Shown: positions 24,491-64,000, counted from the first letter of the stretch. The stretch: 64,000 bases of DNA from IMGVR_UViG_3300028416_000004:168515-232514; one strand, 5' to 3'. The notes: generated from the sequence alone by a model not told the origin. A program made the numbers and translations.

Positions 24491-24500
24491 AATTATTAAA

Positions 24501-34742: not shown

Positions 34743-34757
34743 ATTTTTTTATTTTGT

Positions 34758-35852: not shown

Positions 35853-35869
35853 AATTTTTATATCTTTTT

Positions 35870-47555: not shown

Positions 47556-50500
47556 ATGAGTAAAGTTACAATTAAAAATTCAATAGCACATTTATCTGAT
47601 ATTCATATTAGATACGGAAGTAGGCATCAAGAATATAGAGAAGTTTTTGAAGAAACTATAAAAGATTTAAAAAAACAAAAGCCTAGAAGGATAGCTTTAA
47701 CTGGAGATTTATTTCATATTAAAATAACTCTTTCTCCAAAAGCTGTACAGTTAGCTGGTTGGTTTTTAAAAGAATTGTCTAAAATAGCACCAGTTGATTT
47801 AATTTTAGGTAATCATGATTTAAATCTACAATCTTTAGACCAAGGTAATGCAATTGAACCAATAATTGATTTAGTTAATGGCGGTTATATTGTAGAAAAA
47901 GATGCAAAAGACTTACCTATACACGTAGGTGAAGGAAATGGTATTTTCTTTTTTTTACATAGTGGTTTTTACAATATTGAAGATGATATTGTTTACGGTA
48001 TTTATTCTTGTCTGGATGATGAAATATTAACTCTAAGTAAGAAGGATAAAAACAAAACTTATATTGCTATGTATCATGGGCCCATTTATGGCTCTAGAGG
48101 AAATAATGGTTATGAGTTACATTCTAATGAATATATGATGAAGTTAAGTAGCTTTAATAACTTCGATATAGTCATGTTAGGAGATATTCATGAACACCAA
48201 GCTTTTTCTTTAAAAGATTCTTCTATTGAAAATGTAGCTTATCCTGGGTCTTTAATACAGCAAGATTATGGTGAAAGTATTGATAAAGGTTATATTATTT
48301 GGAATTTAGAAACTAAAAAGTTTGAAAGAAAATTTATACCTAATAACTATGGATTTTCTAGTTTACACATTTCAAAAGGAGAATTGTTTGAAGAAAGGTT
48401 AGAAGATTTAAAATTATCTAATAATCCTAAAAAAACAAAAGTTTCTATTGTATGGGAGGAATATGAAGAAAATTATTCTGTTGAAAAAGAAAAGCAAATA
48501 GAAAAGTTTATTAAAAACAAATATGGTTGTGAAATTATCAATATTGATTGTAAATATATAAGTAAAGAAGATGAGATTGACGAATTATCTATTGATGATG
48601 ACATTGATTATTCGAATACAGATGAATTTGAAGATTTATTAAAAGAATTTGTTGAAAATAGTGAATATGATAATGAAGAAGAAGTTTTAGAGTTATCAAG
48701 AAAAATAGATGAAGAATTAAATTATTTAATAACTAAAGGTAAAAAATGGTTTTTAGATAGTTTAGAAGTATGGAATTTATTTGGTTTCCCTTCAGAGAAA
48801 ACTACATTTGATTTCAATAAAATGACTAGTGTAACTGGTATTTTCGGTAAAAACTTTAGTGGTAAAACAAACATCATTAGAGCTTTAGTTTGGATTGCTT
48901 ACAGAAAAATATTAGGCGGTGGAGAACCATATAGATTAACTAATATGTACACCAAAGATGATAAAGCTGGTGGTAGAATTTATTTAACTATAGATTCTCA
49001 AAAGTACTATATTGAAAGAACTGTAAAAGTTAAAACTAAAAAAGATGGCACTTATGATGTTTCATATGGGGTTGAATATAAAGTTTTAAAAACTGATGAG
49101 GAAGGTAAAGAGAAGTGGGTTTCTATAGATTCCGAAAAAGCTGCAACAGAAAAAAAAGAAAGAAATAATATTATAATTGATTCTATAGGTACATTTGATG
49201 ACTTCACTAAAATTGTTTTACAAGCTCAAGGGGGTGAGGGTAACTTTTTAGATATGAGTCAACAACCTAAAAATGATTTAATCAACAAATATTTAGGGCT
49301 TGAAATTTTTAGGGATAGGTACGAATTTGCTAAAAAGACTTTTAACGACATAAAAGCAAAGCAGAAATTTTTAGGAAGCTCTAAAGAACATCAAGAATCT
49401 ATAGAAAAAGAAAAAGAATCAATTAAAAGTAACAAAACTTCACTAAAACAATATCAAGATGAAAAGTTAGATACTGAAAAATTAGTTGAAAATCAAGAAG
49501 GTGAAATATTAGAGTTAACAAAAACTTTAATAAAAGTAGAAGAAACAAAATATAAAGATGTAGATTCAGCAAATAAAATTATAGAAAAAACAAAAGAAAA
49601 AATAGATAACAATAATAGTTCTCAAAAGGATTTGACAGATTGGTTGTCTATTAATTATAAGAAAGAAATCCCTCAAGATAATGTTCTTACGGTTAGTGAA
49701 ATTGAAAGAAAATTAAAAGAAGAAAGGTCATTTTTTGAAACAGAAAAAAAAGAATATAATTCTATAATGAGTTGGGTTGAAGAGAATCCTAAACAAAAAG
49801 AGATAGATGTAAAACCTTTAAATTCTAAAATATTAGAAATAGAATCTGCCTTGTCTAAATTAAGAGATAAGTTAGAAATATCTAAAGGTAAAAAATGTCC
49901 TACTTGTGGAAATGTAGAACAAAAAGCTGATTTAGAATTAGAAAAAAAATGCACTTCAGATATTGAAAGAGGGGAAATCTCTTTAAAAAACAAGAATATT
50001 GAATTAAAAAATGCTGAAGATATAGTTTCTCACAATATAACTTTTGATAAAAAACAAAATAAATTAGGTTCAATAAAAAACTCACTAAAAGAAAGGAAAA
50101 TAAAAATTGATAACCTTAAAGAATCTTTGGAAACTTCTATGAAAATAGATGATATAAAGAAGCATAATAATTTAGTTGAATCGAAAAGTAAGGAATTAGA
50201 AAATTTAAAAAATGAAAACTTATCATTAAATAAAGAATTAGAAAGTGTAGAAAAAGATATTTCCATTTTAGAGACAAATAAAAATTCAATTGAAAGTAAT
50301 AAAGATATAAATTTAAAAATAAAACTTTATGAAGATGAAAAGAAGTCTTTAAAATTAATAATTAATCAATTGAACGATAAATTAACTTCTATTAAATCAG
50401 AAATTAGAATATCAGAAAATAATATAGAAAATTTAGAAGAAAAGTTAGAAGTTATCAAAAAAGCTGAATCTTCATTTAGTAAATACGCTATATATTTACA

Positions 50501-51056
50501 AGCAGTACATAGAGATGGTATACCTGCTAGAATTATTAAGAAAAAACTTCCTGTTATAAATTATAAAATAAATTCTATTTTGAAAAATTTAGTAGATTTT
50601 AAAGTAGAATTAACTATAAAGAGTAATGGAGACATTAAAGAATTTTTCTATTTCAACTCTTTGGAAAGAGATGGTCTTCCAATGTCTATGGCTTCTGGTG
50701 CACAAAAGTTTATTGGTAGTGTTGCTATAAGGGATTCATTGCATTTTGTAAGTTCTTTAACTAAACCATCTTTATGTATTATTGATGAAGGTTTTGGTTC
50801 TTTAGATGATGATTTAACTATTGCTATGCAATCTGTTTTTTATTACTTAAAAGATAAATATAAAAACATATGGATTATTACTCACAAAAATGAAATTAAA
50901 GATTTCGTTGATAATATAATACAAGTTTCAAAGGATAGAAGAATGTTAACTGATGAACAAATGAAAGATAATCCGAAAGCTGGTATTTCAGTTTTTGATT
51001 TAAGTCATTCAAGTAATAAAGGTGAAGTTAATAAAGTAAAAGAATTAGTCCATTAA
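47556..51056 (+). CDS. Mre11-Rad50 (SbcD-SbcC; T4 gp47-gp46-like) nuclease-ATPase fusion
   Basis: Phosphoesterase motifs HLSDIH, GDLFH, GNHD and LGDIH; Walker A GKNFSGKT; zinc hook CPTC; signature MASGAQ; Walker B IIDEGFGSLD; H-loop ITH; all in one 1166-aa frame. Confidence 0.92.
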   Translation: MSKVTIKNSIAHLSDIHIRYGSRHQEYREVFEETIKDLKKQKPRRIALTGDLFHIKITLSPKAVQLAGWFLKELSKIAPVDLILGNHDLNLQSLDQGNAIEPIIDLVNGGYIVEKDAKDLPIHVGEGNGIFFFLHSGFYNIEDDIVYGIYSCLDDEILTLSKKDKNKTYIAMYHGPIYGSRGNNGYELHSNEYMMKLSSFNNFDIVMLGDIHEHQAFSLKDSSIENVAYPGSLIQQDYGESIDKGYIIWNLETKKFERKFIPNNYGFSSLHISKGELFEERLEDLKLSNNPKKTKVSIVWEEYEENYSVEKEKQIEKFIKNKYGCEIINIDCKYISKEDEIDELSIDDDIDYSNTDEFEDLLKEFVENSEYDNEEEVLELSRKIDEELNYLITKGKKWFLDSLEVWNLFGFPSEKTTFDFNKMTSVTGIFGKNFSGKTNIIRALVWIAYRKILGGGEPYRLTNMYTKDDKAGGRIYLTIDSQKYYIERTVKVKTKKDGTYDVSYGVEYKVLKTDEEGKEKWVSIDSEKAATEKKERNNIIIDSIGTFDDFTKIVLQAQGGEGNFLDMSQQPKNDLINKYLGLEIFRDRYEFAKKTFNDIKAKQKFLGSSKEHQESIEKEKESIKSNKTSLKQYQDEKLDTEKLVENQEGEILELTKTLIKVEETKYKDVDSANKIIEKTKEKIDNNNSSQKDLTDWLSINYKKEIPQDNVLTVSEIERKLKEERSFFETEKKEYNSIMSWVEENPKQKEIDVKPLNSKILEIESALSKLRDKLEISKGKKCPTCGNVEQKADLELEKKCTSDIERGEISLKNKNIELKNAEDIVSHNITFDKKQNKLGSIKNSLKERKIKIDNLKESLETSMKIDDIKKHNNLVESKSKELENLKNENLSLNKELESVEKDISILETNKNSIESNKDINLKIKLYEDEKKSLKLIINQLNDKLTSIKSEIRISENNIENLEEKLEVIKKAESSFSKYAIYLQAVHRDGIPARIIKKKLPVINYKINSILKNLVDFKVELTIKSNGDIKEFFYFNSLERDGLPMSMASGAQKFIGSVAIRDSLHFVSSLTKPSLCIIDEGFGSLDDDLTIAMQSVFYYLKDKYKNIWIITHKNEIKDFVDNIIQVSKDRRMLTDEQMKDNPKAGISVFDLSHSSNKGEVNKVKELVH

Positions 51057-53563
51057 TCGTTTGTTTCTGGATTATCATAAGGTTGTTCTAAGTCTCTAGC
51101 ACCAGATTCTCTAAATCTTCTGACTTTAGATTTAAAATCACCTTCTTCTTTTTGTTTTTGAATTAATTCATCTTGGTATTTTTTTGCTTTTGACAAGTCA
51201 AAATTTACTTCTACTGTATTCATTCCTTTATCATTAGGGTTGTATTTATCTGGATTAAAATTGAAGAAATTTCCAGTAAACCACATTCCTCTAATGTTAT
51301 CAGCTTTAAAAAGTCGCCAAACATTCTTAGCTTCTGCGCTACGAATGTTGGTGCTTTTAGCTTCAGATTCTGATTGACCTATTGTGTGTACAGCTCTTAT
51401 GACACGATTACCAGCTCTTGAAATTCCCATAGCTACAGGATAAATCAATCTATATTTACCTGAAGGAGCTTTCATTTCATCACCTTTGTATAAAATTCCA
51501 ACTTCTCTACCTTGTGTTATTGCTTGAGTCATTAAATCTAAATTAAATGGAACTCTTGTGTTACTAGCTGAAAAAGGGTTAGAAGATTCTGTTAAAATTT
51601 TTTCATTATTAGAAAGTACACTTTGTAATTCTCCCCTTATTAATTTTCTAATTTCTGATAATTGATTTTTTTTAATATCTTCAATTTCTCTTAATTCTAT
51701 TACGTTAGGGTTGTATATTATAATATGTTTAGAGTTTTCTCTATTTACAATGACTCCATCAATTCCCAATTTAACACAATTTCTTACAAATTCAACACTA
51801 TCATACCTATAAGCTTCAATCCATATTTGAAGTAACACATCTTTTTCATTGTCATTATATTCATAAGCTGAATCAACCATCATTTCAATTCCAGTTTCAA
51901 TATTTGGAGACCAGTTACTAGTAGTTATTTCTAGTCTTGGTGACATTTTAACTAATTGAATTAATAAATCTCTATTAATATCTTTTTCCTCAGATTCATC
52001 AAATAAAATTTTTGGTGAAACCCTAACTTCATAAACATAACCTCCATCAGCATAACCTAAAGCTTCTTCGTATGAAGTTGTAAAATAAACCCCAGGACCT
52101 TCTTGGTCTGTTGCTTCTTCTGCACCAACAAATTCATCTGTAAATTTTTTAATTTTATGTGGAGAACCATGATAAACAATAAAACTTTCGTTTTCAGTAA
52201 CCTCTTTCATTAAATCATTTTCATTTATAGATTTATCATCAATATCAAATGCTTTAATTTTCCCTTCACTATCAACCCCTAAATTATCAGGTTTTATATC
52301 GCTTGCTTCAATGCCTAAATATCTATATGCTCTATTTATGTCATCAATATCATCAATAAATTTAATCATTTCTTCATCTAAATCTAATTCAGAAGTATCC
52401 AAATTATCTAAATATTGAATAGGTAAACCTTGTTCGCTTAATAAGTCTTCAAGTTGGTAAAACATATCTTCTATACTATAATCCTCCTCCAGTCTTTCCA
52501 TTATAATATAACACTTACCATCTATTACATCCGCAAAATAAAAATCAACAAATCCTTTTAGGGCTGGTATGTTTTTGTTAACTAATTTTTTTGCTAACTC
52601 AAACTCGCTTTTAGATGATGTTATTTTTAAAACTCTACTTTCATCTATTATATAAGCATTTCCAAAGTCACCAGAACCAACAAAAGATAAATCATCTGGG
52701 TTTATGTTTTGCTCTTTATAAAAACTTTCTAAATTAGATTCTTTTAAAGTGCTTTCATTTGTATAACTAGTATCAACCTTAGTATAATAACCTTTATATT
52801 TTTCTATATCTTCTTTAACTAAATTTACACATACCTTTTCTTCACCAGCAGCTATTGCAGACATAATTCTATGGTGACCATCTCTAAGTTGAACTGTAAA
52901 TGAACCTAAATCTCCATCTTGATTTTCGATAGCTTTTTTAATTTTGGTTTCAATATCTATAAATTCATTAAATGTATTATAATCTTCCTCCTCTTTAAAA
53001 TCTTCACCATCAGAATCTCTTTCTAAATCATAAAACTCTTTTTTTAATTGTTCTAAAGATTTAATATTTTCTATTAAGCTAAATTTGTTTTCAATAAAAA
53101 AATCATCTACTTCAGTTAAACTTGTGTAATTTTCATCTGGGATATATGTTTCATTCCCTATATATTCATCTAAGTCACTATCCCCTACACTATAAGGCTC
53201 TTTAACACCATCATAATCTACCTCAAATCTATTATTAAAACTAGCTATTTGATGTTCTTTTATTTCTTGAAAGTTTACTACATTCCCATAAGCATAAGAA
53301 CATTCTATTTCTACATTTTCTTCACTGTTCTTAATTAAGTTAGTTAAAAAATCCATTTTATCAGAATCATATATATTCCCCCACATTCCTTCAACTTGAT
53401 TTTTATTTACAACAATCATTTGATAAGAATCTCCATACCAAGTAACTTGTCTTCCTATGTATTCCGCAGAATTTTCTTTTATATCATCTGAAAGTTTATT
53501 TGAAAAATATTCTTCTTCAAATAAAACACTAAAAGTCTCTCTAATTATATTTCTTATATTCAT
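51053..53563 (-). CDS. Polyvalent multidomain protein: ParB-like, protein-kinase-like, ADP-ribosyltransferase-like and WYL-like domains
   Basis: DGHHR (aa 228-232); GSGDFG/VLK/DIKPDN/FD (aa ~294-441); VYHGSP...GPGVYFT..YEEALGYA...DGVIV (aa ~463 onward); C-terminal R.IYP...IRAV...WRLFKADNI. Confidence 0.75.
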   Translation of the reverse strand: MNIRNIIRETFSVLFEEEYFSNKLSDDIKENSAEYIGRQVTWYGDSYQMIVVNKNQVEGMWGNIYDSDKMDFLTNLIKNSEENVEIECSYAYGNVVNFQEIKEHQIASFNNRFEVDYDGVKEPYSVGDSDLDEYIGNETYIPDENYTSLTEVDDFFIENKFSLIENIKSLEQLKKEFYDLERDSDGEDFKEEEDYNTFNEFIDIETKIKKAIENQDGDLGSFTVQLRDGHHRIMSAIAAGEEKVCVNLVKEDIEKYKGYYTKVDTSYTNESTLKESNLESFYKEQNINPDDLSFVGSGDFGNAYIIDESRVLKITSSKSEFELAKKLVNKNIPALKGFVDFYFADVIDGKCYIIMERLEEDYSIEDMFYQLEDLLSEQGLPIQYLDNLDTSELDLDEEMIKFIDDIDDINRAYRYLGIEASDIKPDNLGVDSEGKIKAFDIDDKSINENDLMKEVTENESFIVYHGSPHKIKKFTDEFVGAEEATDQEGPGVYFTTSYEEALGYADGGYVYEVRVSPKILFDESEEKDINRDLLIQLVKMSPRLEITTSNWSPNIETGIEMMVDSAYEYNDNEKDVLLQIWIEAYRYDSVEFVRNCVKLGIDGVIVNRENSKHIIIYNPNVIELREIEDIKKNQLSEIRKLIRGELQSVLSNNEKILTESSNPFSASNTRVPFNLDLMTQAITQGREVGILYKGDEMKAPSGKYRLIYPVAMGISRAGNRVIRAVHTIGQSESEAKSTNIRSAEAKNVWRLFKADNIRGMWFTGNFFNFNPDKYNPNDKGMNTVEVNFDLSKAKKYQDELIQKQKEEGDFKSKVRRFRESGARDLEQPYDNPETND

Positions 53564-53578
53564 AATAATTAAATAGGT

Positions 53579-54730
53579 TTACTTCTTTTTTTTCTTTTTA
53601 TTTAGTGATTCTTGAGCTTTTTTCCACAAACTCTCATCAGATTGTCTAGCTTTTCCTTTACCTGTTATAAAGCTATTAACTCTTCCCATAGCCCATTGGT
53701 TTTGAGAAACTCCAGACCTATGACCAGTTCTCCAAGCAGCCATACCTTTATCATGAACTTGTTTTAAAATATAATATGGTATACCTGTTTTTTCTGATTT
53801 GTTTTCTAAAGCTTTTTTTGTGTTACTTGAAACACTCTTAGATTCATCAATTTTATTATGACTACTAGGCATTATTGAAATTCCGTATTTTTTATTTAAT
53901 ATTTTTTCTAAAGTTATAGGTATTAACATAGATATTGAACCCATAGCCATAATTGCAACTATTTTTGCTATATCTTTTGCTTGTTCTTTTAGAAATTTTA
54001 TTTCCTTTTCAGAAACTTCTTGTTTTGATAATATTTTTTTACAAATTTTAAAAGCTTCTTTAGTTTCATCTTTTTCTCTTAATGCTATTTCTTTAAATTT
54101 GTTAAAAGATTGTTTTAGTCTTTCTTTTATTTTATCTTTTTTATCATTTAAAATTTCAACATTTTCACCATACATTTTATGGTATGCTTTAGTTGATGAA
54201 CTTGTTTTGGTTTTTTCTCCTTTATCTGCCTCCCATTGTTTTGTATATGCTTTTGGGTTTGAATGATGTTTTTTTGCAAACTTGTCAATTTCTTTTTTCA
54301 TTTGAGCTCTTTTTTTAGAAGATTTAGAAGTTAGATATTTACCTGGTACTTTTATTCCCTTTTTTGTTCTGGAATCTTTTCCTCTTTCTTCTAAAGAAAT
54401 CTGTAAACTATCAGATATGATTTCTTTTAAATTATCAACTTTATTTAAGTTCAATTTATAAATTTTAATTTCTAAATTCCCATCACCCTTAATTAGTCTA
54501 TGAAATTGTTCTGACTCAATTAATATAGGTTCATTAATATTTAAATTCTTAGGAAGTTCATCATCTAATTGTATTTTCCAATCACTTTCATGTAAAGGTA
54601 TTATTATTCTATCTTCAGCATCTCTATGCCAAACTAATTCTTCATTTTTTAATTCTTTTGAGAATGTTCTAATTACAAACTTTCCATCTTTTTGTTCTTT
54701 AAAAGGAAATTTATTTTCTTCTGAATTCAT
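53579..54730 (-). CDS. Multidomain protein: N-terminal cupin-like domain, C-terminal DUF5824-like domain
   Basis: LVWHRD.EDR...WKIQLDDELP...FHRLIKG (cupin-like); TKTSSSTK and GMAAWRTGHRSG..Q.QWAMGRVNSF (DUF5824-like as recalled). Confidence 0.6.
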   Translation of the reverse strand: MNSEENKFPFKEQKDGKFVIRTFSKELKNEELVWHRDAEDRIIIPLHESDWKIQLDDELPKNLNINEPILIESEQFHRLIKGDGNLEIKIYKLNLNKVDNLKEIISDSLQISLEERGKDSRTKKGIKVPGKYLTSKSSKKRAQMKKEIDKFAKKHHSNPKAYTKQWEADKGEKTKTSSSTKAYHKMYGENVEILNDKKDKIKERLKQSFNKFKEIALREKDETKEAFKICKKILSKQEVSEKEIKFLKEQAKDIAKIVAIMAMGSISMLIPITLEKILNKKYGISIMPSSHNKIDESKSVSSNTKKALENKSEKTGIPYYILKQVHDKGMAAWRTGHRSGVSQNQWAMGRVNSFITGKGKARQSDESLWKKAQESLNKKKKKK

Positions 54731-54749
54731 AATTTTTTTTAATTATTTT

Positions 54750-55370
54750 TTACCACCATTTTCCACTTCCACTTAAACCTAACATTTTTGCATATCTAGG
54801 CAATCTACAAGACCAATATCCTGGTGTAGTTTTGTCATTTTTTTGTTCACAATTATGTCTATCAGCAAATCTTTTTCTTGCTTCTGGGTCTCGAAGTTTT
54901 ACTGCTAGTTTGCCTCCACCTTCTTTTGCACCAAATGAAACTTTTTGAATCTTTTTAGTTTTAGGATTTCTAACATAAACATAAAATTTTTTTGAACCAC
55001 CTCTTTTTGGTTTGTTTAACTTTATGTTTTTATTATTTTTTTTACCCTCTTCTAAATTTTCTTCATATTCTTCAAATGGTAAATCTAACACCACTTTTTC
55101 CCCCTCAAATATGCCAAAGTAACCTGCGTCACTTTTTATTAACTCTTCATCTTTTTCGCACAATAAAACTGAATTAGAATTATAAAGTTCTCTGACTTCA
55201 TTTATTAATTTCAAATGTTTGTTAGATGCGTATCTATAAATTGAATTCGATATGCCTAATTTGTTTTCTAGGTGATAATTTAAACTTTCACTTATAACAT
55301 TTTTAGACTCTTTAAGAATTATATTTTCCTTAAATTCAACCTCTAATATTTCTGAAATAAACTTTTTCAT
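54750..55370 (-). CDS. Phage-type hypothetical protein with basic Cys/His C-terminal domain
   Basis: KKFYVYV.NPKT..I.KVSFG...RKRFADRHNC...KTTPGYWSC. Confidence 0.65.
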   Translation of the reverse strand: MKKFISEILEVEFKENIILKESKNVISESLNYHLENKLGISNSIYRYASNKHLKLINEVRELYNSNSVLLCEKDEELIKSDAGYFGIFEGEKVVLDLPFEEYEENLEEGKKNNKNIKLNKPKRGGSKKFYVYVRNPKTKKIQKVSFGAKEGGGKLAVKLRDPEARKRFADRHNCEQKNDKTTPGYWSCRLPRYAKMLGLSGSGKWW

Positions 55371-55420
55371 TTATGCTTTTAATAACTATTAAATAAATAG
55401 TTATAAATTTATAAACATAG

Positions 55421-56032
55421 TTAAAATGAATTGTTTTTTAGGTTTGGAAAATTTTTCCAATTATAATCTCTTTTTGATTTATTGAATTTTTTACTTAAAT
55501 ACTTAACTTCACTTTTATTTAAGTCATTTTCATCTGCAGTTTCATCTGCTTTGTCGGAAAAAGTTTTTTGAGTTTTAACATCATAGTTTGAATCAAACCA
55601 AAATCTATCTTCTTCTGGGTTATATTCTTTTTTAAAATCTTCAGAATTAAAAATTTGATTAAAAATATCCATATATATATTAGATACTGAATAATTATCT
55701 GTAGATTTAGGGCCTACATTTTCTTTTACTGATTTTTTGTTTTTTTTTGATGCACAATGAGCTTTTTGGCTAAACCCTTTAGGGTTATTACAATTTATTG
55801 AATTTTTATATTTTTGACTCCAAGCTTCATCAAGACTTCCATACTTGTCAATCATCCATTTTTTTAACTCTTCAATATTAAACTTTTTATTTTCAGAATC
55901 ATACCCACAAGTATGGCAAAGGTATGGATTTTTATCTTCTTTCTCTTTTTCCCAACTATGAAAACAATTATCACAAACAATCATCCCAGAAAGTTCTTTT
56001 AATCTTTTTTTATATTCTTCATTTAAAATCAT
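55421..56032 (-). CDS. Hypothetical protein with Zn-ribbon and WSQKYK..INCNNPKGFSQKAHC module
   Basis: CDNC...CHTC ribbon; second Cys/His module; N-terminal RLKELSG motif. Confidence 0.65.
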   Translation of the reverse strand: MILNEEYKKRLKELSGMIVCDNCFHSWEKEKEDKNPYLCHTCGYDSENKKFNIEELKKWMIDKYGSLDEAWSQKYKNSINCNNPKGFSQKAHCASKKNKKSVKENVGPKSTDNYSVSNIYMDIFNQIFNSEDFKKEYNPEEDRFWFDSNYDVKTQKTFSDKADETADENDLNKSEVKYLSKKFNKSKRDYNWKNFPNLKNNSF

Positions 56033-56035
56033 AGC

Positions 56036-56401
56036 TTATTTTTTTGTAATTTTAATAAAGTCATCTACAATTTCAACTTTAAAGTCAGAAGGAGAAATGT
56101 TTTCAAAATAAATCTTATAAAATTCTAATGGATTTTTGTTATAATCTAAACTTTTTACTTCTTTTGTTTTATTTTTTTTAGAATCTTTATCTTCCCATGT
56201 TATCAAATTCTTTTTTGTGGAATTTTTATAGAATTCTACTTCATCTATAAATTGCCATTTCTTATCTCCTTTTTTCCTTTTATAAAAAACATCACCACCA
56301 ATGTTACGAACTTGATAATCATAGTTGTTAAGGTTATCATTTTCTAACATTATCCCAGATAAAAATTTAATTCTATTTGTATATGATTCAGATAATTTCA
56401 T
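56036..56401 (-). CDS. Hypothetical protein (RIKFLSG motif)
   Basis: 121-aa ORF with the upstream late-type motif at 56423-56430. Confidence 0.6.
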   Translation of the reverse strand: MKLSESYTNRIKFLSGIMLENDNLNNYDYQVRNIGGDVFYKRKKGDKKWQFIDEVEFYKNSTKKNLITWEDKDSKKNKTKEVKSLDYNKNPLEFYKIYFENISPSDFKVEIVDDFIKITKK

Positions 56402-56476
56402 ACTATTTAATCTAAAGTTTATTATAAATATTAATAAACTTTACTTTTGTGATTGTTTTATTAAATTGTTTTCATA

Positions 56477-56767
56477 ATGCACACTAGGAGACAAATAATT
56501 AAGAATCAAAAAGACTTTTTATATGAAATTAAAAAATCTTTAAATAAAGAATTTAATAATTCAAAACAAGAATTGTTAAATATAGAAACAGATGATAAGG
56601 AAATAATAGATGCTAAAAATATTTTAGAATCTAAATTTAAAAATGTCAAAATCGAAAAAGAAATAAATAAGTTTTTTATAAATGAAAATAACATTTATCC
56701 CAAATATTATGTTTGGTGGGATGAGATTAATGAAAAAGTAGAAATATTTTTATATGAAATCAAATAG
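56477..56767 (+). CDS. Hypothetical protein
   Basis: 96-aa ORF with a TACTTTTG -7-like element at 56442-56449. Confidence 0.55.
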   Translation: MHTRRQIIKNQKDFLYEIKKSLNKEFNNSKQELLNIETDDKEIIDAKNILESKFKNVKIEKEINKFFINENNIYPKYYVWWDEINEKVEIFLYEIK

Positions 56768-57092
56768 AAAGAATACAGAAAATGTTTTAATAGACCTATC
56801 ATATATGGGTTCTATGAATCAATTTGAAGAATTTTATGGTTTTTCAGTTACATACCAAGAATTAGAACAACAAAGTTATGTTGAATTTAAAGATATAATG
56901 TTTGAAAATATTAATCCTAAAATAAAATTTAGAAAATATGGAAGATTTGGTAACATATTGACTGTTAGAGCTGAAATGTATCAAGAAGAAATACAAAAAT
57001 TTGAAGAATTAATACAAAATAATAAGATTAAAACTATTTATGACTGGATAGTGAAAGATGTTACAATTTTAAAAGAAGAAGATTATGAGTGA
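56754..57092 (+). CDS. Hypothetical protein
   Basis: 112-aa ORF overlapping both neighbours by a few bases. Confidence 0.6.
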   Translation: MKSNRKNTENVLIDLSYMGSMNQFEEFYGFSVTYQELEQQSYVEFKDIMFENINPKIKFRKYGRFGNILTVRAEMYQEEIQKFEELIQNNKIKTIYDWIVKDVTILKEEDYE

Positions 57093-57789
57093 AAAAGGAG
57101 ATGCTAAAAAAGAAATGATGGATAGGTTTACTTCAATGGGCATACCTAAACCAGTAAAGCCGATTTCAAACCCCACTGTTACGCCTAAAAATACAGAAAT
57201 GGCCTCTAAAATGGAACAGATTAGGAATGGAGGTTTAAAAAATAACTTTAAACAGTTTATAGATAAATCTGAAAAAGTTTCACATTCACCATCGGCTATA
57301 CCAGTTCCTAAAGTTGGAAAAAATCCAAATGAAAAAGCTAAAAATGTACCTAATTTAAAAAGTTACTCTTCATCTTCAAGTTCTGAAGCTTCTATGTTAG
57401 AGAATATGATGTATGGAGATAGTAATGTAGCTGTAAGTACACAAAATGGTGAAATAGGTAATTATGGTCCTACAAGTACAAACACTAGACAATTGTTACA
57501 ACAGAGATTGTCAGAGAAGAAAAGTCAAGTAAATGAAAATAGCTATCAATCTGAAGAATTTTTACATTACAATTCTGATAGTAATATAACTGATGCAGAG
57601 TTAACTGAAAAAATTACAGAAATTGCTAAAAAAGTCTCAAGAGAAATGATTAAAAAAGTCATTTTGGAATTATCTGATTCTAAAGGTGGATTAGTTATTG
57701 AAAGTAAAAATGTTAAAAAAGCAGAAGTTATCGCAAAAAATAAAGTTAAAATAGACGGTAAAGTTTATAAATTAAGTTTAGATAAGTAA
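57085..57789 (+). CDS. Hypothetical protein
   Basis: 234-aa ORF. Confidence 0.65.
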   Translation: MSEKGDAKKEMMDRFTSMGIPKPVKPISNPTVTPKNTEMASKMEQIRNGGLKNNFKQFIDKSEKVSHSPSAIPVPKVGKNPNEKAKNVPNLKSYSSSSSSEASMLENMMYGDSNVAVSTQNGEIGNYGPTSTNTRQLLQQRLSEKKSQVNENSYQSEEFLHYNSDSNITDAELTEKITEIAKKVSREMIKKVILELSDSKGGLVIESKNVKKAEVIAKNKVKIDGKVYKLSLDK

Positions 57790-58211
57790 TGATGAAAACT
57801 AATTATGATATAAATTCTGAATTAATAAAAAATAAATTTTTTATTTCTGTTGAATTAAAATATAAAGATAGCTTTTTTGATGATAAATATAATTTAAAAG
57901 GATTTGTAAGTGAAAATAAAATAACCTTTTCTGTATACAAAAATAAAAAACAAATGGAAAAGGCATCTTTTGTTTTAGAAGAGAGTTTAGATAACAATAC
58001 TTTTTTGAAAGAGTTAAGTGATAGTATAAAAGATTATGATTTAATGGAAGATTTCAAAAAGAATCATTTCAATGATTTTTCTAAAGAATTATCCGAATAT
58101 ATTAAGAAAGATAATTCATCTATTATTTTGAATAACAAGCTAGTAGAAGGTTATAAAACAAAAATGCAATCAGTAGCTGGAATAAGGGGTGTCAATCAAA
58201 GTTTAAGATAA
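57789..58211 (+). CDS. Hypothetical protein (C-terminal KMQSVAGI motif)
   Basis: 140-aa ORF coupled to the previous stop (TAATG). Confidence 0.6.
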   Translation: MMKTNYDINSELIKNKFFISVELKYKDSFFDDKYNLKGFVSENKITFSVYKNKKQMEKASFVLEESLDNNTFLKELSDSIKDYDLMEDFKKNHFNDFSKELSEYIKKDNSSIILNNKLVEGYKTKMQSVAGIRGVNQSLR

Positions 58212-58212
58212 T

Positions 58213-59163
58213 ATGTTGATAAAAAAAGGTGACAAAGGAAAAAAAGTAAAAGAAATACAAAAGGCATTAGGTTTAAAAGATGATGGTATTTTCGGTTCAA
58301 ATACCGAAAGAGCTGTTAAAAAATTTCAAAAAGAAAATAGCCTTAAAGATGATGGTATTGTAGGTAAAAAAACATATCAAAAACTCCTAAAGTTAGATAC
58401 AGACAGACAAGGTTTTGATGATTCTAATGATACAGATAATAAATTAAATTATTTAGGCTCTTATGAAACGAGTTTAGGGTTAAAAATAGATAAGGCATAT
58501 TTGGACTCTGATGAATATGTTAAAGATTATGGTAAAATAGAACCAGAAAGTTTCTTTATACATCATACAGCTGGGTGGAATAACCCTTATAGTACAATTA
58601 ATAGTTGGAATATAGATGCTAGAGGGAGGATTGCTACACAATTTTGTATAGGTGGAACTAGCATAAAAAATGGAGATGATACATATAACGGAAAAGTTGT
58701 AGAGTGTTTTCCAAATAACTATATAGGTTGGCATTTAGGTAAAGTTGGAAATTTTAGTGTTTCTAAAAAATCAGCAGGAGTTGAAATTAATAATTTTGGA
58801 TACGTAACAAAGAAAGGTAATAAATTTTATAATTATGTAAATATTGAAGTACCTGAAGAAATGGTTTGTGATTTAGGTTATAAATTTAGAGGTCATCAAT
58901 ATTGGCATGCTTACACTAAAGAACAGATAGATTCTTTAAGGTTGTTAATAAATCATGTTTCAGAAATATACCCTAAAATAGATGTTAAATCAGGTTTAAC
59001 TAAATTATTAAAAGATGGTGTAGAACCTAAAGAAGCATTTGATTTTAATGAAGAAGCTTATAATGGTAGGATAAAAGGTTTATGGTCTCATACAAATGTG
59101 AGAAAAGATAAATTTGATATGTACCCTTGCCCTATGTTAGTTGAAATGTTGAGAAACTTATAA
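58213..59163 (+). CDS. Endolysin: peptidoglycan-binding domain plus N-acetylmuramoyl-L-alanine amidase (Amidase_2)
   Basis: IKKGDKG..VKEIQKALG...DGIFG..TERAVKKFQ...DGIVG..T (PG_binding_1); FIHHTAG, GVEINN and SHTNVRKDKFD zinc-amidase motifs. Confidence 0.9.
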   Translation: MLIKKGDKGKKVKEIQKALGLKDDGIFGSNTERAVKKFQKENSLKDDGIVGKKTYQKLLKLDTDRQGFDDSNDTDNKLNYLGSYETSLGLKIDKAYLDSDEYVKDYGKIEPESFFIHHTAGWNNPYSTINSWNIDARGRIATQFCIGGTSIKNGDDTYNGKVVECFPNNYIGWHLGKVGNFSVSKKSAGVEINNFGYVTKKGNKFYNYVNIEVPEEMVCDLGYKFRGHQYWHAYTKEQIDSLRLLINHVSEIYPKIDVKSGLTKLLKDGVEPKEAFDFNEEAYNGRIKGLWSHTNVRKDKFDMYPCPMLVEMLRNL

Positions 59164-59196
59164 TCAATAGTTAATTTTTAATTCATATTTATTAAT

Positions 59197-59406
59197 ATGG
59201 AAAATATATATGTTATATCAGAATCTAACAATAAACCTTTATCTAAAACTGAGATTAAAAAAATTATACAATCTGAATTAGAAAAGGCTTTTAAAAAGTC
59301 TAACATTTTAAATAAAGAAGATGTTAGAAAAATTGTTAAAGATATGATGATTAAGCAGTATAAGTTTTTCTGGGAAAAGAAAAGTTTTTGGGCAAATAGC
59401 ATTTAG
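59197..59406 (+). CDS. Small hypothetical protein
   Basis: 69 aa with TATTTAT at 59186-59192. Confidence 0.6.
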   Translation: MENIYVISESNNKPLSKTEIKKIIQSELEKAFKKSNILNKEDVRKIVKDMMIKQYKFFWEKKSFWANSI

Positions 59407-59407
59407 T

Positions 59408-59620
59408 ATGAATAAAAAAGAATTAAAAGATTTAATAGATTTAGAAGTTTCTAAAGTTTTTGCTGATATGGTTTATAAAGAACCTAAAGAAGAACCTAAA
59501 GAAGAACCTAAAGAGGAAAATAGTAACAACAATATGATTCAAACTAAAAAAGTAGGTTTAACTGAAGAAGAGTTAGATGAAATATTGTTTTACGGAGGAA
59601 AAAAAGAAAAAGAAGATTAA
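59408..59620 (+). CDS. Small acidic hypothetical protein with KEEP repeat
   Basis: 70 aa; 12-bp repeat AAGAACCTAAAG x3 at ~59478-59513. Confidence 0.55.
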   Translation: MNKKELKDLIDLEVSKVFADMVYKEPKEEPKEEPKEENSNNNMIQTKKVGLTEEELDEILFYGGKKEKED

Positions 59621-59621
59621 G

Positions 59622-60122
59622 ATGGCAACAAACATTACAACAGCAGAAGTGAAAGAATTGCAAAAACAATTTATTGAAAAAATTGGAGATTATGCAGTTA
59701 AATTTGATGATATTTCTCTTTATAAAGGATATAGTGGACAAGATGCAGTTTTTTCTGGTAAAATATTATTAGAGAAAGATTATAGTATATCTTGGTCTTT
59801 TTCTCTTGTGGATGGAATAAAAATATTAGAAGCTAATTTTGTTATTAACGATAAAAATAGAAATATATTACAAAATCTACAAGATATTTATCAAATATTT
59901 TATGAAAAATTTAATCAATTAATAAGAGATATTGAGATAGATTCAGATGTGGAAGGTTTAAGTGATGAAAGGATTAATATGACACAATCTTCAGAGGAGG
60001 AAAGTTCTCAAGAAGAAGAGGAAGAAAATATGTCAATAACAGAATCTAGATTAGTAAAAAATAGAGCTAAGTTAATTAATTCTAGTTATGAAAGAATGAA
60101 AAAATTATCAGGAATTAAATAA
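59622..60122 (+). CDS. Hypothetical protein (C-terminal RMKKLSGI motif)
   Basis: Start moved from 59577 to Met 59622 (MATNIT) to avoid overlapping the upstream gene. Confidence 0.65.
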   Translation: MATNITTAEVKELQKQFIEKIGDYAVKFDDISLYKGYSGQDAVFSGKILLEKDYSISWSFSLVDGIKILEANFVINDKNRNILQNLQDIYQIFYEKFNQLIRDIEIDSDVEGLSDERINMTQSSEEESSQEEEEENMSITESRLVKNRAKLINSSYERMKKLSGIK

Positions 60123-60142
60123 AAAAACAAAAATTATAAAAC

Positions 60143-60178
60143 AAAAAAAAACGCTCACTTAAATGGGCGTTTTTTTTT
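60143..60178. terminator. Bidirectional intrinsic terminator
   Basis: A-run, ACGCTCA-N6-TGGGCGT, T-run between convergent genes. Confidence 0.8.
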
Positions 60179-60193
60179 GTTTTATATAGATAA

Positions 60194-60547
60194 TTAGTTT
60201 TTAATTATCTTCCAACTTTCTAGAGGGTTAGTTTCATATTTTAAAGGTGTCTCTCTATAAATTATAAATTTAAAACTCCTTCCAGGATTAAGAGTATCAT
60301 TACCTTGAATTTTTATGTAATCTCCATCTTTTAACTTTTCGCTTTCAGCAGCGTCAACTATTTTAAATAAATCATCTAATTGTCTTTCCATTTTAATAGT
60401 CACACCTTCAAAATTTAAAATGACAGTTTCACCTGGCTTACTATCAAAAATACTTTCTGAAGAAGTAGGATTTTCTTTTACATGAGAAGTCATTTCTTCG
60501 TATGATTCTCTTATTAATTGTCTTATTAGTTCTTTAGTAATTTTCAT
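60194..60547 (-). CDS. Hypothetical protein (ELIRQLIRES motif)
   Basis: 117 aa with the late-type motif at 60577-60584. Confidence 0.6.
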   Translation of the reverse strand: MKITKELIRQLIRESYEEMTSHVKENPTSSESIFDSKPGETVILNFEGVTIKMERQLDDLFKIVDAAESEKLKDGDYIKIQGNDTLNPGRSFKFIIYRETPLKYETNPLESWKIIKN

Positions 60548-60622: not shown

Positions 60623-62521
60623 ATGACTTCAAATACAATTATTATTACAAAACTCAAAACAAATTATAAAATAGAATATAATTTTAGAAAAAATTTGAGT
60701 GACTTCATAAAAAGTTTTCCAGAAGACCAAAGGAAAATACAAGTAGAATATATACAAAATTCAGACGGTAGTACGTATGAAAATTGGTATAGAATAGTTT
60801 CTTCTGGATATATAGGTAAAGTTGTATCTTTTATAAAAGATAATGGTTTTCCATTTAAGTTTACTAATTTAACAAATGAAGAAGTTGAAGAATTAAGAAA
60901 AGAGTTTGAAAAGAGACAAGAATCTTTACTTAAAGCTTTATCTATGAAAACTGAAAATATAGATACTTCTCATATTGATTTTTCTTTTATGAATATAGAG
61001 CCATATGAATACCAAAAGAAAGCTGCTGTTTTTTTTGACACTTGTAATGGAAAAGCCTTACTTGGAGACCAACCAGGGGTAGGAAAAACTGCCTCTGCTA
61101 TGACTTACGCTGCTTGGAAAAAAAAGAAGACTCTAATAGTTTGTCCAGCAAACTTAAGACTTAATTGGAGGAGTGAAATACTTAAGTTTACTAAAGAGAA
61201 GGCGTTTGTTTATAAGTGGAAACCAACAAAAAAGTCAAAGAAAATAAATCACTCAAAAGATGAATCTATGTTCCACATAATAAGTTATAGTTCATTAGAC
61301 ACTTATATAACTATAGAGATGTCTCACAAATGTAAAAATGTATTTTGTGGCTGGAGTGAAAGAAATAGTAAAAAAAGATACAAAGATAAAGTTTGTCCAA
61401 GTTGTGGTGTTAGGAATATGGTAAATTCAAGAGCTACAAAAAATATATCCTTCACCCCAGACAAAGAAGGTCATCAATTGAATCCAAAAGATTATGAAAT
61501 ATTAATAATGGATGAAGCTCACTACATTAAAAACGACTCTGCAGATAGAACTAAATTAGCAAAGAAAACTTTAAAAGAAATACCTCAAAGATTATTATTG
61601 ACAGGCACAGCAATAAAAAGTAGACCATATGAATTTTATTCTTTGTTGAATTTTTTATATCCAGAAGAATGGAGTAATGCTCATTCATTTGGAATGAGGT
61701 ATTGTGCTGCAGAAAAGAATAATTTTGGATGGGATTATTCAGGTGCTTCTAATTTGGATGAATTATTTGAAAAGATTTCACCTTTCTTCTTGAGAAGATT
61801 AAAAAAAGATATATTAAAACATTTACCCCCAAAAACATATACAGTAATACCTATAGAGCTTAGTTCTTCTGAAATGTCTGAATATAACAAAATAAAAAAA
61901 GGAATTAAAGAAGAAATGAGTCAAGATGATAAAAATGCAGACAATAGAATGAATCACTTGACTAGGATTCAAAAGTTAAAAATGTTTACATCTGAAATAA
62001 AAATGAAAAAAGCTTTTGAGTTTATTCAAGATATCATAGATGGAGATGAAAAAGTTGTAGTATTTACTCAATATAAAAGTATTTCATATGAGGTAGTAAG
62101 CAAATTTGGAGACAAAGCAGTTGTTTTTAATGGAGATATAAATGCTAACAAAAAAGAAGAAGCAGTAGAAGCTTTTATGGATGATAAAAATATAAAGGTT
62201 TTTTCTGGTACAATTGGAGCGGCAGGTGTAGGAATAACTTTAACCTCTGCTAGTATTTCAATTTTTATAGACCAACCTTGGACTAGTGCTGATAGAGAAC
62301 AAGCAGAAGATAGAATACATAGAGCTTCTTCAAAAGCGGATAAAATACAAATAATTAGATTGGTCTGTCAAGATACTATAGATGAAGATATCGAAAAGTT
62401 GTTAAATCAAAAATCTTCAATTTTATCTAAAGTGTTAGATGGAAAAGAATTTGAGGAAACAGTAGAAGTTAAAGATGGTAGTATTTTTAATGATTTAGTA
62501 AGTTTGTTATATAATTCTTAA
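60623..62521 (+). CDS. SNF2/SWI2-family (SF2) helicase/annealing ATPase with Zn-finger insert
   Basis: LGDQPGVGKT, DEAH, LLTGT, LRRLKKDI, AAGVGITL and QAEDRIHR motifs; C.{4}C...C..C insert. Confidence 0.9.
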   Translation: MTSNTIIITKLKTNYKIEYNFRKNLSDFIKSFPEDQRKIQVEYIQNSDGSTYENWYRIVSSGYIGKVVSFIKDNGFPFKFTNLTNEEVEELRKEFEKRQESLLKALSMKTENIDTSHIDFSFMNIEPYEYQKKAAVFFDTCNGKALLGDQPGVGKTASAMTYAAWKKKKTLIVCPANLRLNWRSEILKFTKEKAFVYKWKPTKKSKKINHSKDESMFHIISYSSLDTYITIEMSHKCKNVFCGWSERNSKKRYKDKVCPSCGVRNMVNSRATKNISFTPDKEGHQLNPKDYEILIMDEAHYIKNDSADRTKLAKKTLKEIPQRLLLTGTAIKSRPYEFYSLLNFLYPEEWSNAHSFGMRYCAAEKNNFGWDYSGASNLDELFEKISPFFLRRLKKDILKHLPPKTYTVIPIELSSSEMSEYNKIKKGIKEEMSQDDKNADNRMNHLTRIQKLKMFTSEIKMKKAFEFIQDIIDGDEKVVVFTQYKSISYEVVSKFGDKAVVFNGDINANKKEEAVEAFMDDKNIKVFSGTIGAAGVGITLTSASISIFIDQPWTSADREQAEDRIHRASSKADKIQIIRLVCQDTIDEDIEKLLNQKSSILSKVLDGKEFEETVEVKDGSIFNDLVSLLYNS

Positions 62522-62627: not shown

Positions 62628-62702
62628 GCTCCCATCGTCTATCGGTTAGGACATCAGGTTTTCATCCTGAAAAGCGGGGTTCGATTCCCCGTGGGAGTAC
62701 CA
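62628..62702 (+). tRNA. tRNA-Glu (TTC), CCA encoded
   Basis: Acceptor GCTCCCA/TGGGAGT; anticodon arm TCAGG-TTTTCAT-CCTGA; T-arm GCGGG-TTCGATT-CCCGT-like; ends ACCA. Confidence 0.92.
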
Positions 62703-62749
62703 CTTGTTTTTAATTTCATTATCACAAATAAGTGAAATATATAATATAT

Positions 62750-62821
62750 TGCGTGAAAGTGTAAAAGGTTGCATGGGACGCTCATAACATCTACGGGGTG
62801 GTTCGAATCCACAACACGCTA
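62750..62821 (+). tRNA. Degenerate tRNA with CAT anticodon (Met-like; possibly a pseudo-tRNA)
   Basis: Cloverleaf with CTCATAA loop and GGTTCGAATCC T-arm, but mismatches at 1:72, 7:66, 30:40 and 49:65, A at position 8, and no CCA. Confidence 0.55.
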
Positions 62822-62870
62822 CAAAGATTTAGAGTAATTAACTAAATCTTGTCTAGTTCGAAATAGACGA

Positions 62871-62944
62871 TTGAATATAGTGTAAGAGGCACGGAAAAAG
62901 GTAATACGGACTCAAGATTAAGGTTCGATTCATTATTATTCAAC
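62871..62944 (+). ncRNA. tRNA-like element lacking a foldable anticodon arm
   Basis: TTGAATA/TATTCAA acceptor-like stem, TA-GTGT..GCAC D-arm, GGTTCGATTC T-loop; the 25-nt middle has no stem. Confidence 0.45.
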
Positions 62945-63160
62945 TAGTGAGTAAGAGGTGCTCATAGAGTTTGTAGGTAACTCCACAACAAAACCTTCCC
63001 CCAAAGTCTCATGTAGGGTTATGAGTGAGGTATGTGGAATCAGGGCGGAAAGTCCTCCTACCCCCACATTAAGGACTGACGTTTTCAGTGGGTAAGACCA
63101 ACAGGTTTTAGAAAAAGGAAAAAACCGATATATCTAGCATATGTAATCTCAATATGTGAC
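62945..63160 (+). ncRNA. Unassigned structured RNA candidate A
   Basis: GC-richer intergenic stretch with several stems and a loop-bulge pairing GTAGG/CCTAC (see findings). Confidence 0.5.
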
Positions 63161-63164
63161 ATTT

Positions 63165-63238
63165 GCACCCATAGCTCAGCTGAATAGAGCAATTCACTTC
63201 TAATGAATAGGTCCCAGGTTTGAATCCTGGTGGGTGTA
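63165..63238 (+). tRNA. tRNA-Arg (TCT)
   Basis: GCACCCA/TGGGTGT acceptor; ATTCA-CTTCTAA-TGAAT anticodon arm; CCAGG-TTTGAAT-CCTGG T-arm. Confidence 0.9.
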
Positions 63239-63424
63239 CTAAAAAAAGTGATAAGTTCCAAACAAATAATTAGCTCTACCAGGGCACAAATCCGTGTGAG
63301 GTTATCTAATGTGAGGAATTTCTTTTAATATCACACCTATACATAGGTCGAAAAGATATATAAAAAATGGATTTATTTAATACTAGTCAAAATAAATTGT
63401 TTATATTAAAAGATAGCTTTTTAA

Positions 63425-63498
63425 GGTCCTTTAACTCAGTTGGTTAGAGTAACTGACTCATAATCAGTAGGTCGATGGTTCGAGTCCATCAAGGACCA
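63425..63498 (+). tRNA. tRNA with CAT anticodon, most likely Ile2 (lysidine-modified)
   Basis: GGTCCTT/AAGGACC acceptor with C4-G69 and C5-G68 (TilS determinants in E. coli); ACTGA-CTCATAA-TCAGT arm. Confidence 0.85.
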
Positions 63499-63512
63499 CA
63501 TATTAAACTAGT

Positions 63513-63785
63513 CTCCAGAAACTTCTTTTATGTAAAGCCTAAGTTGCTAAGGTAAGAATGATAGCAGTTTCTCACAATCGATTAAGCACTACATGACAAT
63601 TGTGAGGATGTAGTAATAAACTTGCATAATAAGAAGTTTCAAATGGAGTATTTCACATTGTCGGTTTGGTGGATGTGATACACGACCCTTAGACGTAAGG
63701 GCTACTCTTAATAATAAGTTGTAATCGCCCAGGGTAACGGGGACAACCAATATAGAGAAAAGCAGTTAAAATCTGTAGGCCGACA
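63513..63785 (+). ncRNA. Unassigned structured RNA candidate B (pseudoknotted domain plus multibranch domain)
   Basis: Long-range stems 63513-35/63622-48 and 63659-68/63776-85; H-type pseudoknot at 63571-63614. Confidence 0.65.
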
Positions 63786-63799
63786 CATTATTTATAAAC

Positions 63800-63873
63800 T
63801 CCTCCTTAGTTCAGTTGGTTAGAACATTTGACTGTTAATCAAAGGGTCCTTGGTTCGAGTCCAAGAGGGGGAG
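63800..63873 (+). tRNA. tRNA-Asn (GTT)
   Basis: TCCTCCT/AGGGGGA acceptor with G73; TTTGA-CTGTTAA-TCAAA arm; CTTGG-TTCGAGT-CCAAG T-arm. Confidence 0.92.
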
Positions 63874-64000
63874 CTTTTTTTTTTTAAAAAAATGTTAAAT
63901 ATATTTATTCTTTTTTTTACGATTATTTCTTTTAATAAACTTTATACCTCTAGAATATTTTTCTCTATGCCTAATCATAGCGTTTTTCATTCTTAAATCT

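Follow-up and report, generated by a model that had tools for sequence, protein, structure and literature searches.

A four-module polyvalent-type protein of a marine jumbo myovirus: module assignments, fusion history and possible roles

The 64-kb stretch IMGVR_UViG_3300028416_000004:168515-232514 (hereafter the window, from whose first letter all positions are counted) has a GC content of 27.5% and comes from a marine jumbo myovirus with relatives of up to 411 kb. At 51053..53563 on its minus strand lies an open reading frame (ORF) encoding a protein of 836 amino acids (aa), which closes a tightly packed block of five co-oriented genes and converges on a fused SbcCD gene. The protein comprises four independently folding modules, termed A to D, and the gene arose as a Rosetta-stone fusion: four accessory genes, each of which stands alone in other phages, are joined head to tail. 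A reading of this locus made earlier from the sequence alone had proposed ParB-like, Ser/Thr-kinase-like, ADP-ribosyltransferase (ART)-like and WYL-like modules in a single uninterrupted ORF. Both the ORF and the separability of the four modules, which were mapped by independent homologs, bear this out. All of the quoted motifs were likewise located, namely DGHHR (aa 228-232), GSGDFG (aa 296-301), VLK (aa 311-313), DIKPDN (aa 422-427), AFD (aa 438-440), YHGS (aa 464-467) and GPGVYFTTSYEEALGYA (aa 489-505), together with three quoted linker strings. The features of the ORF, in the order of the protein, are as follows.

51053..53563, minus strand: whole ORF, 836 aa, with an ATG start and no internal stops
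52775..53563, minus strand: module A (aa 1-263), with 72 homologs (alignment A3) and an AF2 model of pLDDT 87.7
52868..52882, minus strand: DGHHR motif (aa 228-232), the centre of a strand-motif-helix unit common to ParB-like nucleases
52715..52774, minus strand: A-B linker (aa 264-283, DTSYTNESTLKESNLESFYK); standalone A proteins stop immediately before it
52223..52714, minus strand: module B (aa 284-447), minimal protein-kinase-like domain
52178..52222, minus strand: B-C linker (aa 448-462, ENDLMKEVTENESFI), with an 'h-x-E-h-T-E-(G/N)' motif
51692..52177, minus strand: module C (aa 463-624), ADP-ribosyltransferase of the polyvalent H-Y-D clade
51569..51691, minus strand: C-D linker (aa 625-665)
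51119..51568, minus strand: module D (aa 666-815), WYL-like beta-barrel of SH3/Sm type, rich in invariant basic residues
51056..51118, minus strand: C-terminal tail (aa 816-836, ...EQPYDNPETND), disordered in the model

The four modules

The ART-like assignment of module C is upheld by a match of residues 461-621 to ART-PolyVal (PF18760; Tox-ART-HYD2 clade) with an E-value of 1e-8 and 36.5 bits, above the gathering cutoff of 31.2. The module also matches phrog_25279 (E 2e-28). In the polyvalent ART clade, the active site consists of a histidine in strand 1, a tyrosine in strand 2 and an aspartate in strand 5 (PMC5512222); the corresponding residues H465, Y493 and D602 are invariant in seven sequences, including those of three cultured jumbo phages (alignment A5). 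Module C is placed in this clade because its Pfam score exceeds the gathering cutoff and the H-Y-D residues are intact. Standalone homologs of about 198 aa, annotated as hypothetical proteins, are found in the cultured jumbo phages CBB (CBB_455), GAP32 (GAP32_436) and XaC1 (XaC1_303).

The kinase-like assignment of module B is sustained at the level of the family. The window sequence by itself scores 10.6-11.2 bits against Pkinase (PF00069), below the gathering cutoff of 31.7, and has no match to Kinase-PolyVal (PF18762) at E<=1. The family profile, compared with PDB sequences, yielded 756 matches at E<=1 (best 8e-6), and among the matches listed all 60 of 60 were protein kinases. Pkinase was matched individually by 16 of 62 diverse standalone members, the best at E 5e-8. 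Seven columns are invariant across these 62 members (G298, G301, K313, D422, N427, D440 and T315), and the alphaC glutamate E320 is conserved in at least 90%. The catalytic set is colinear, running from the glycine loop (G296-G301) through the beta3 lysine K313, E320, D422 and N427 to the DFG-equivalent D440. Structural look-alikes in the Atlas belong to kinase families only (Phage_T7_kinase, Pkinase, APH, Kinase-PolyVal and OspG_kinase; TM 0.56-0.83), with Kinase-PolyVal appearing at rank 39. The module ends about seven residues past the DFG aspartate, the profile ends six positions past the DFG, and the standalone members stop there too; the activation segment and the C-lobe helices are absent while the active site is kept. 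On the strength of the family profile, module B is a protein-kinase-like domain with every catalytic residue intact. The family is large, with 1231 representative clusters at E<=0.001 in an exhaustive profile search; many of the matches are standalone proteins of 170-200 aa, and others lie inside giant proteins of up to 4512 aa.

Module A begins with a short N-terminal helix modelled at low confidence (aa 3-16). Next come an alpha/beta body and an acidic helical insert, and the ParB/Srx-type core is at the C-terminal end. Its family is abundant in marine metagenomes and is made up mostly of standalone proteins, mostly of 251-281 aa. Within the DGHHR motif, G229, H231 and R232 are invariant across the family and D228 and H230 nearly so. 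An hhalign comparison of alignment A3 with five annotated ParB-like nucleases gave a probability of 95.2% (E 2.7e-8) over 33 columns. In a tblastn search with aa 189-263, nearly all matches were genes annotated as 'ParB-like nuclease domain protein', which bear a 'DGHHR..A.I..G...V.V' signature like that of module A, and there is a match to PHROG 21912 at aa 215-249 (E 0.01). Foldseek found no significant global fold match for the model (best E 0.24-0.33, PDB and BFVD). Its weak matches are mostly to ParB/Srx proteins (sulfiredoxin, Osa, ParB, Noc, PadC and viral 'ParB/Sulfiredoxin' entries) and extend over 25-50 columns that surround DGHHR, with an rmsd near 1 Å in many cases. Pfam, including ParB_N, returned no ParB match in module A or in 33 family members scanned singly; GNAT matches that appeared in these member-wise scans came from fused partner domains and were set aside. 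The ParB-like claim is confirmed for the 33-residue core only. By these alignments, module A shares the ParB/Srx active-site core, with the other approximately 220 residues being a family-specific elaboration.

The WYL-like claim for module D survives at the level of the fold and is not backed by the Pfam profile. The AF2 model has a confident beta-rich core (pLDDT 82-95), and among its top PDB matches by Foldseek are the WYL domains of PafBC, CapW, BrxR and DriD, with probabilities of 0.84-1.00, a best E-value of only 8e-3 and TMq of 0.28-0.35. In the Atlas, the module has a TM of about 0.4 to bacterial WYL regulators and of 0.6 to viral clusters in which 13-15% bear WYL. No match to Pfam WYL (PF13280) was found in the window sequence, and among 34 D-family members one matched, at E 0.033. 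Module D is therefore best described as WYL-like in its predicted fold. A search with aa ~636-836 recovered 71 standalone homologs of 159-250 aa, mostly 197-245 aa, from marine metagenomes; the 'EQP..NPE' motif of the C-terminal tail is conserved in many of them. Searching Pfam and the PDB with the single sequences of modules A, B and D gave nothing usable, and the profiles of the A and D families produced only spurious matches among PDB sequences (mevalonate kinase, S100 proteins and an exported protein).

Fusion history, linkers and a portable leader

A full-length copy of the protein, 94% identical and with the same architecture and neighbourhood (P0001, on contig L001), was found in another sample, in an independent Logan assembly. 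A second relative, P0002 from a JGI sample, has the architecture A+B+D and lacks the ART: it matches aa 1-448 joined to aa 599-834. At its junction, '...AFDIEDKSINE' is directly joined to 'VSEIRK...', which leaves out about aa 449-634, comprising the ART and the short leader that belongs to it; the ART is therefore a clean cassette indel. Other relatives are partial. Residues 2-263 form the C-terminus of P0003, residues 279-448 or thereabouts form the C-termini of P0005, P0006, P0008, P0009 and P0013, and a segment of about aa 452-630 is fused to poly(A)-polymerase/CCA-type nucleotidyltransferase domains in P0010 to P0012. The architectures seen are A+B+D, X+A, X+B, B+C, GNAT+A and PolyA_pol+C. 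The kinase-then-ART order recurs in P0004 and P0178, and the partner domains are modifiers of protein or RNA. In P0178 (1124 aa), the minimal kinase is followed by ART-PolyVal and then GNAT, and in P0011 (1308 aa), a weak GNAT match precedes ART-PolyVal and the PolyA_pol/CCA-adding domains.

A 411-kb JGI contig (L002, Ga0645785_00067) runs colinear with the window from 40 to 62.5 kb, with amino-acid identities of 37-72%. Where the window has the 836-aa gene, this contig has only a 223-aa standalone D gene, likewise convergent with the fused SbcCD gene; the contig's A homolog lies about 93 kb away. This syntenic relative thus holds D alone at the locus. Module D is the ancestral resident there, and modules A, B and C joined it later on its upstream side. 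Each module has evolved under purifying selection: comparison with P0001 (dS 0.2) gives dN/dS values of 0.10 (A), 0.17 (B), 0.14 (C) and 0.03 (D). Constraint is looser in the A-B and C-D linkers, at 0.45 and 0.54 respectively (small counts), and the B-C linker shows no nonsynonymous and two synonymous differences. The fusion is thus real and functional, and it is young by comparison with the locus.

The linkers themselves resemble sequences found elsewhere at the borders of the same modules. An 'hh(K/R/N)ES' stretch like that of the A-B linker precedes module B in other proteins, and the 'h-x-E-h-T-E-(G/N)' motif of the B-C linker is also found ahead of the ART in metagenomic fusion proteins; the N-termini of the standalone jumbo-phage ARTs resemble the latter only loosely. 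These two linkers are flexible junctions with short leader-like motifs. In the C-D linker, residues ~636-660 (SEIRKLIRGELQSVL...) align with the 'M.LSESYK.RL.ELAGI' leader of standalone D proteins, and this linker is a relic of the N-terminal leader of a standalone D gene.

That leader, with the consensus 'M-h-(L/T/S)-(S/E)-E-x-Y-K-x-R-L-x-E-L-(A/S)-G-I', is found at the N-terminus of at least six unrelated accessory protein families on marine jumbo-phage contigs, a Cys-rich protein of 203 aa among them. Its carriers include the two window ORFs listed below, three members of the A family, a protein of 126 aa from a 372-kb contig and a P-loop protein of 179 aa from a 102-kb contig. Two degenerate DNA scans of IMG/VR gave two and five loci, which are too few to define a distribution.

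55421-56032, minus strand: window ORF with the D-type leader
56036-56401, minus strand: window ORF with the D-type leader
51581-51661, minus strand: leader relic in the C-D linker of the 836-aa gene
L002:7783-8136; L004:10001-10804; L011:6282-6662, minus strand; L012:2740-3279: leader sites on other contigs

A looser N-terminal pattern, 'hh(R/K/N)E' within the first 25 residues, is found in 7 of 51 ORFs, against about 3% expected, and five of these seven lie in a 9.5-kb block of small accessory genes at window positions 51053-60547.

Gene neighbourhood

The five-gene minus-strand block runs from 56401 to 51053, with gaps of 15, 19, 50 and 3 nucleotides (nt) between its genes, and the stop of the 836-aa ORF overlaps that of the convergent SbcCD gene by 4 nt.

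53579..56401, minus strand: four co-oriented genes upstream of the 836-aa ORF (383, 206, 203 and 121 aa), two of which start with the D-family portable leader
47556..51056, plus strand: fused SbcD and SbcC, 1166 aa, convergent neighbour and anchor of the synteny with the 411-kb relative

The genes around the ORF are those of replication and recombination (SbcCD, primase and RuvC) together with small unknown or accessory genes, a non-structural context, and the baseplate and fibre genes of the window, including one for a T4-like baseplate wedge protein, lie at 2-38 kb. The fusion of SbcD (metallophosphatase) and SbcC (AAA_23/SMC-like) in a single protein is kept in the relatives, with 1166 aa in L001 and 1144 aa in L002. 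The gene directly upstream of the 836-aa ORF (53579-54730, minus strand) has a DUF5824-type C-terminus according to the L001 annotation and matches PHROG 3041 and 28338. It encodes 383 aa in the window and 257 aa in the 411-kb relative (L002:9222-9995), and the two have only the N-terminal ~100 residues in common, a further case of modular remodelling within the block.

A scan of the window for sigma-70-type promoters showed no enrichment (34 sites against 43 expected). The sequence TATAAATA is enriched, with 40 sites against 23.5 +/- 5.4 expected (e.g. at 6562, 14694, 44110, 56423, 60577 and 60603), and several sites lie 7-56 nt upstream of starts. Its orientation upstream of genes is inconsistent, however: in the minus-strand structural block, copies between genes lie on the other strand, and no copy was found on the coding strand upstream of the five-gene operon. 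Given this inconsistency and the 27.5% GC genome, it was dropped as a candidate expression-timing signal.

Elsewhere in the window, tandem paralogous virion or fibre-like genes occupy 18466-19835, 21946-26726 and 33609-37054 on the minus strand. Two of them begin MAQTRVGV and two begin MAQVVGGVQAPKY, with PHROGs 24074/8510 and 9915/22899 in common, and three neighbouring genes (364-394 aa) are alike at their N-termini. Four tRNA genes (Glu-TTC, Arg-TCT, Met-CAT and Asn-GTT) are clustered at 62628-63874 on the plus strand. The SNF2 helicase of the window (60623-62521, plus strand) has 632 aa and no LAGLIDADG/Hom_end insert, whereas its counterpart in the 94%-identical relative (L001:16-2970, minus strand) has 984 aa with LAGLIDADG/Hom_end matches, which suggests that the longer form carries an intein or a homing-endonuclease insertion. 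The 411-kb relative contains at least two genes of 419 aa that are TnpB-like (Cas12f1-like_TNB; L002:1-1078 and L004:18883-20142, both minus strand).

Possible roles and comparison with known systems

The reading that we prefer, at a probability of roughly one half, is that the 836-aa protein is a polyvalent-type protein for host takeover, host manipulation or counter-defence that acts as one polypeptide. Polyvalent proteins, as described by Iyer, Burroughs, Anand, de Souza and Aravind (2017; PMC5512222), bring together H-Y-D ARTs, ParB-like domains and kinases without the C-terminal subdomain, a repertoire that agrees with the polyvalent frame in which the protein had been placed. ARTs and polyvalent proteins are also noted in a survey of jumbo phages by the same group (PMC7824862). 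The active sites are intact, comprising K313, E320, D422, N427 and D440 of the kinase, H465, Y493 and D602 of the ART and the ParB-type DGHHR. Working as a single polypeptide within the infected cell, the protein would use its minimal kinase to phosphorylate host, and possibly phage, proteins, and its H-Y-D ART would ADP-ribosylate host, possibly also phage, proteins. The ParB/Srx-type core may provide NTP-dependent DNA binding or nicking, and the WYL-like barrel may bind a nucleic-acid or nucleotide ligand and so tether or gate the enzymes. We lean towards a protein that is made in the cell rather than delivered by the virion, and that requires no obligatory cleavage.

Several points weigh against this preference. 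For phage polyvalent proteins, Iyer et al. predict packaging (PMC5512222), contrary to synthesis within the cell. A kinase without a C-lobe may require a partner, as OspG does, or be regulatory, the ParB likeness of module A is limited to 33 residues, and module D resembles WYL domains at marginal Foldseek E-values and fails Pfam WYL. The modules each work alone in other phages, and the fusion may thus add nothing mechanistically.

Among the alternatives, it is possible, though unlikely, that the protein is packaged and injected intact and acts in the first minutes of infection, uncleaved like the N4 virion RNA polymerase or the transferred ArdC and TraC1. Iyer et al. argue that phage polyvalent proteins travel with the DNA and that several are transferred unprocessed (PMC5512222), ejection proteins are common in jumbo phages, and the ART, kinase and ParB repertoire fits the class. 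However, the gene has no contextual tie to head or portal genes, the protein has no virion-association domain, and the syntenic relative retains only the small D protein at the locus.

Somewhat less probable again is a mechanistically neutral fusion, in which four accessory activities came to be co-translated after the loss of stop codons between cassettes while the modules stayed uncoupled. That every module occurs on its own elsewhere, that the architectures are promiscuous and that the ART is a clean indel would all be expected of such a fusion, but the same 836-aa architecture is kept at dS 0.2 in a second sample under strong purifying selection, and the kinase-then-ART order recurs in distant proteins.

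Two further proposals involve cleavage. The D-type leader and the looser 'hh(R/K)E' N-termini between 51 and 60.5 kb might together represent a portable sorting signal, such as a capsid-targeting or ejection tag cut by a maturation protease, with the 836-aa protein as concatenated cargo released as separate enzymes. We regard this as doubtful. The portable leader is the only thread by which a targeting or processing model might be revived. Similarly doubtful is the precursor model of the sequence-only reading. It has the protein directed to the prohead, where a T4-type prohead protease would cleave it after (L/I/V)-x-E in every linker; the four enzymes so released would then enter the host with the DNA. 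It is true that T4 Alt and the internal proteins are packaged via short N-terminal targeting sequences that are removed after (L/I)-x-E (PMC9026906), so that short tags suffice for head targeting, and that this phage has a T4-like baseplate wedge protein. Each linker contains at least one [LIV]-x-E, the N-terminus (MNIRNIIRE...) and the portable leader of the neighbouring genes both have the look of short amphipathic tags with h-x-E at the end, and the B-C linker is free of nonsynonymous change between the two copies.

The claimed enrichment of (L/I/V)-x-E at the module boundaries did not hold up, however. The whole protein contains 22 such motifs against 19.7 expected from its composition, and the three linkers contain four against 2.0 expected (binomial P=0.13), the densest 20-aa stretch holding three. 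The clustering is within chance, because the linker enrichment is not significant and the whole-protein count is near its expectation. Furthermore, the A-B and C-D linkers are fast-evolving and the least constrained parts of the protein, and the gene context is non-structural. No MuF, portal or peptidase domain and no link to a type IV secretion system (T4SS) was found in the 836-aa protein or in ten related multidomain proteins, whose partner domains are GNAT, ART and nucleotidyltransferase. A scan of 40 window ORFs turned up no prohead protease, the head genes lying outside the 64-kb window. CBB_455 is not named among the virion proteins identified by mass spectrometry in the CBB paper and its supplements, where it appears only in the annotation table, which is indirect evidence. 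The findings give no support to either packaging or cleavage.

An assembly or frameshift artefact joining separate genes, for which nothing specific speaks beyond the fact that metagenomic contigs may be chimeric, is rejected, given the identical architecture and neighbourhood in the independent Logan assembly, the related A+B+D protein from a JGI sample, and a continuous frame with codon-level purifying selection across the junctions.

Should host defence or transcription be the target of the modules, these would be candidate new counter-defence enzymes, and the WYL-like module in particular could serve the phage by sensing or soaking up nucleic-acid or nucleotide signals. The gene also shows how polyvalent proteins form, by the concatenation of standalone, leader-bearing accessory genes at a conserved locus and the clean gain and loss of cassettes. 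Finally, it reveals three large phage families that have no Pfam family of their own, namely the DGHHR ParB-core, minimal kinase (1231 representative clusters) and WYL-like families, and ties them functionally to an ADP-ribosyltransferase.

The individual modules can each be set beside known systems. T4 Alt, like module C, is a phage ADP-ribosyltransferase thought to modify host proteins, but it belongs to the R-S-E clade and module C to the H-Y-D clade. The T4 internal proteins carry short N-terminal segments with h-x-E, as are found around the 836-aa protein, in which the frequency of h-x-E is nevertheless at chance level. Shigella OspG and the phage T7 kinase, like module B, have a core of ~170-200 aa with a glycine loop, lysine, catalytic Asp/Asn and DFG aspartate and a reduced C-lobe, and Atlas clusters resembling module B bear PF22303 OspG_kinase and PF27024 Phage_T7_kinase; there is no significant direct sequence match to either, and module B differs in stopping about seven residues after the DFG aspartate. 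Module A has the strand-DGHHR-helix-strand core of the phage ParB-like nucleases and the ParB-Srx superfamily (Osa, sulfiredoxin and ParB; VQLRDGHHRIMSAIAAGEEKVCVNL vs RLADGHHRFAAAIDLGYEAVPVLV), but only 33 columns align, and ~220 of its residues have neither a detectable counterpart nor a global fold match there. In Foldseek, the predicted barrel of module D superposes best on the WYL domains of PafBC, DriD, CapW and BrxR, at marginal E-values. In contrast to these sensors, module D has no helix-turn-helix or WCX partner domain and falls below Pfam WYL, and its relatives are standalone phage proteins of ~200 aa with a leader and an acidic tail.

The closest known class as a whole is that of the polyvalent proteins (PMC5512222). 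Like these, the 836-aa protein unites several conflict-type domains in one phage polypeptide, among them an H-Y-D ART, a Ser/Thr-type kinase minus its C-terminal subdomain and a ParB/Srx-type domain, and it shows promiscuous domain shuffling with standalone cassettes in related genomes. It differs in having no MuF, portal, peptidase or T4SS association, and hence no tie to a delivery apparatus. Module B lies outside Pfam Kinase-PolyVal, module A is a different and much elaborated family that is not demonstrably DdrB-like, and the source is a marine jumbo phage rather than one of the lineages stressed in that study. The sequence-only reading had held the combination to be unlike any described system; this is correct for the WYL-like module, which is missing from the published repertoire, but not for the combinations of ART, kinase and ParB-like domains already catalogued there. 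The class and three of the four domain types have been known since 2017 (PMC5512222), and the combination, with its unlisted WYL-like module, is an extension of that class that is not categorically new.

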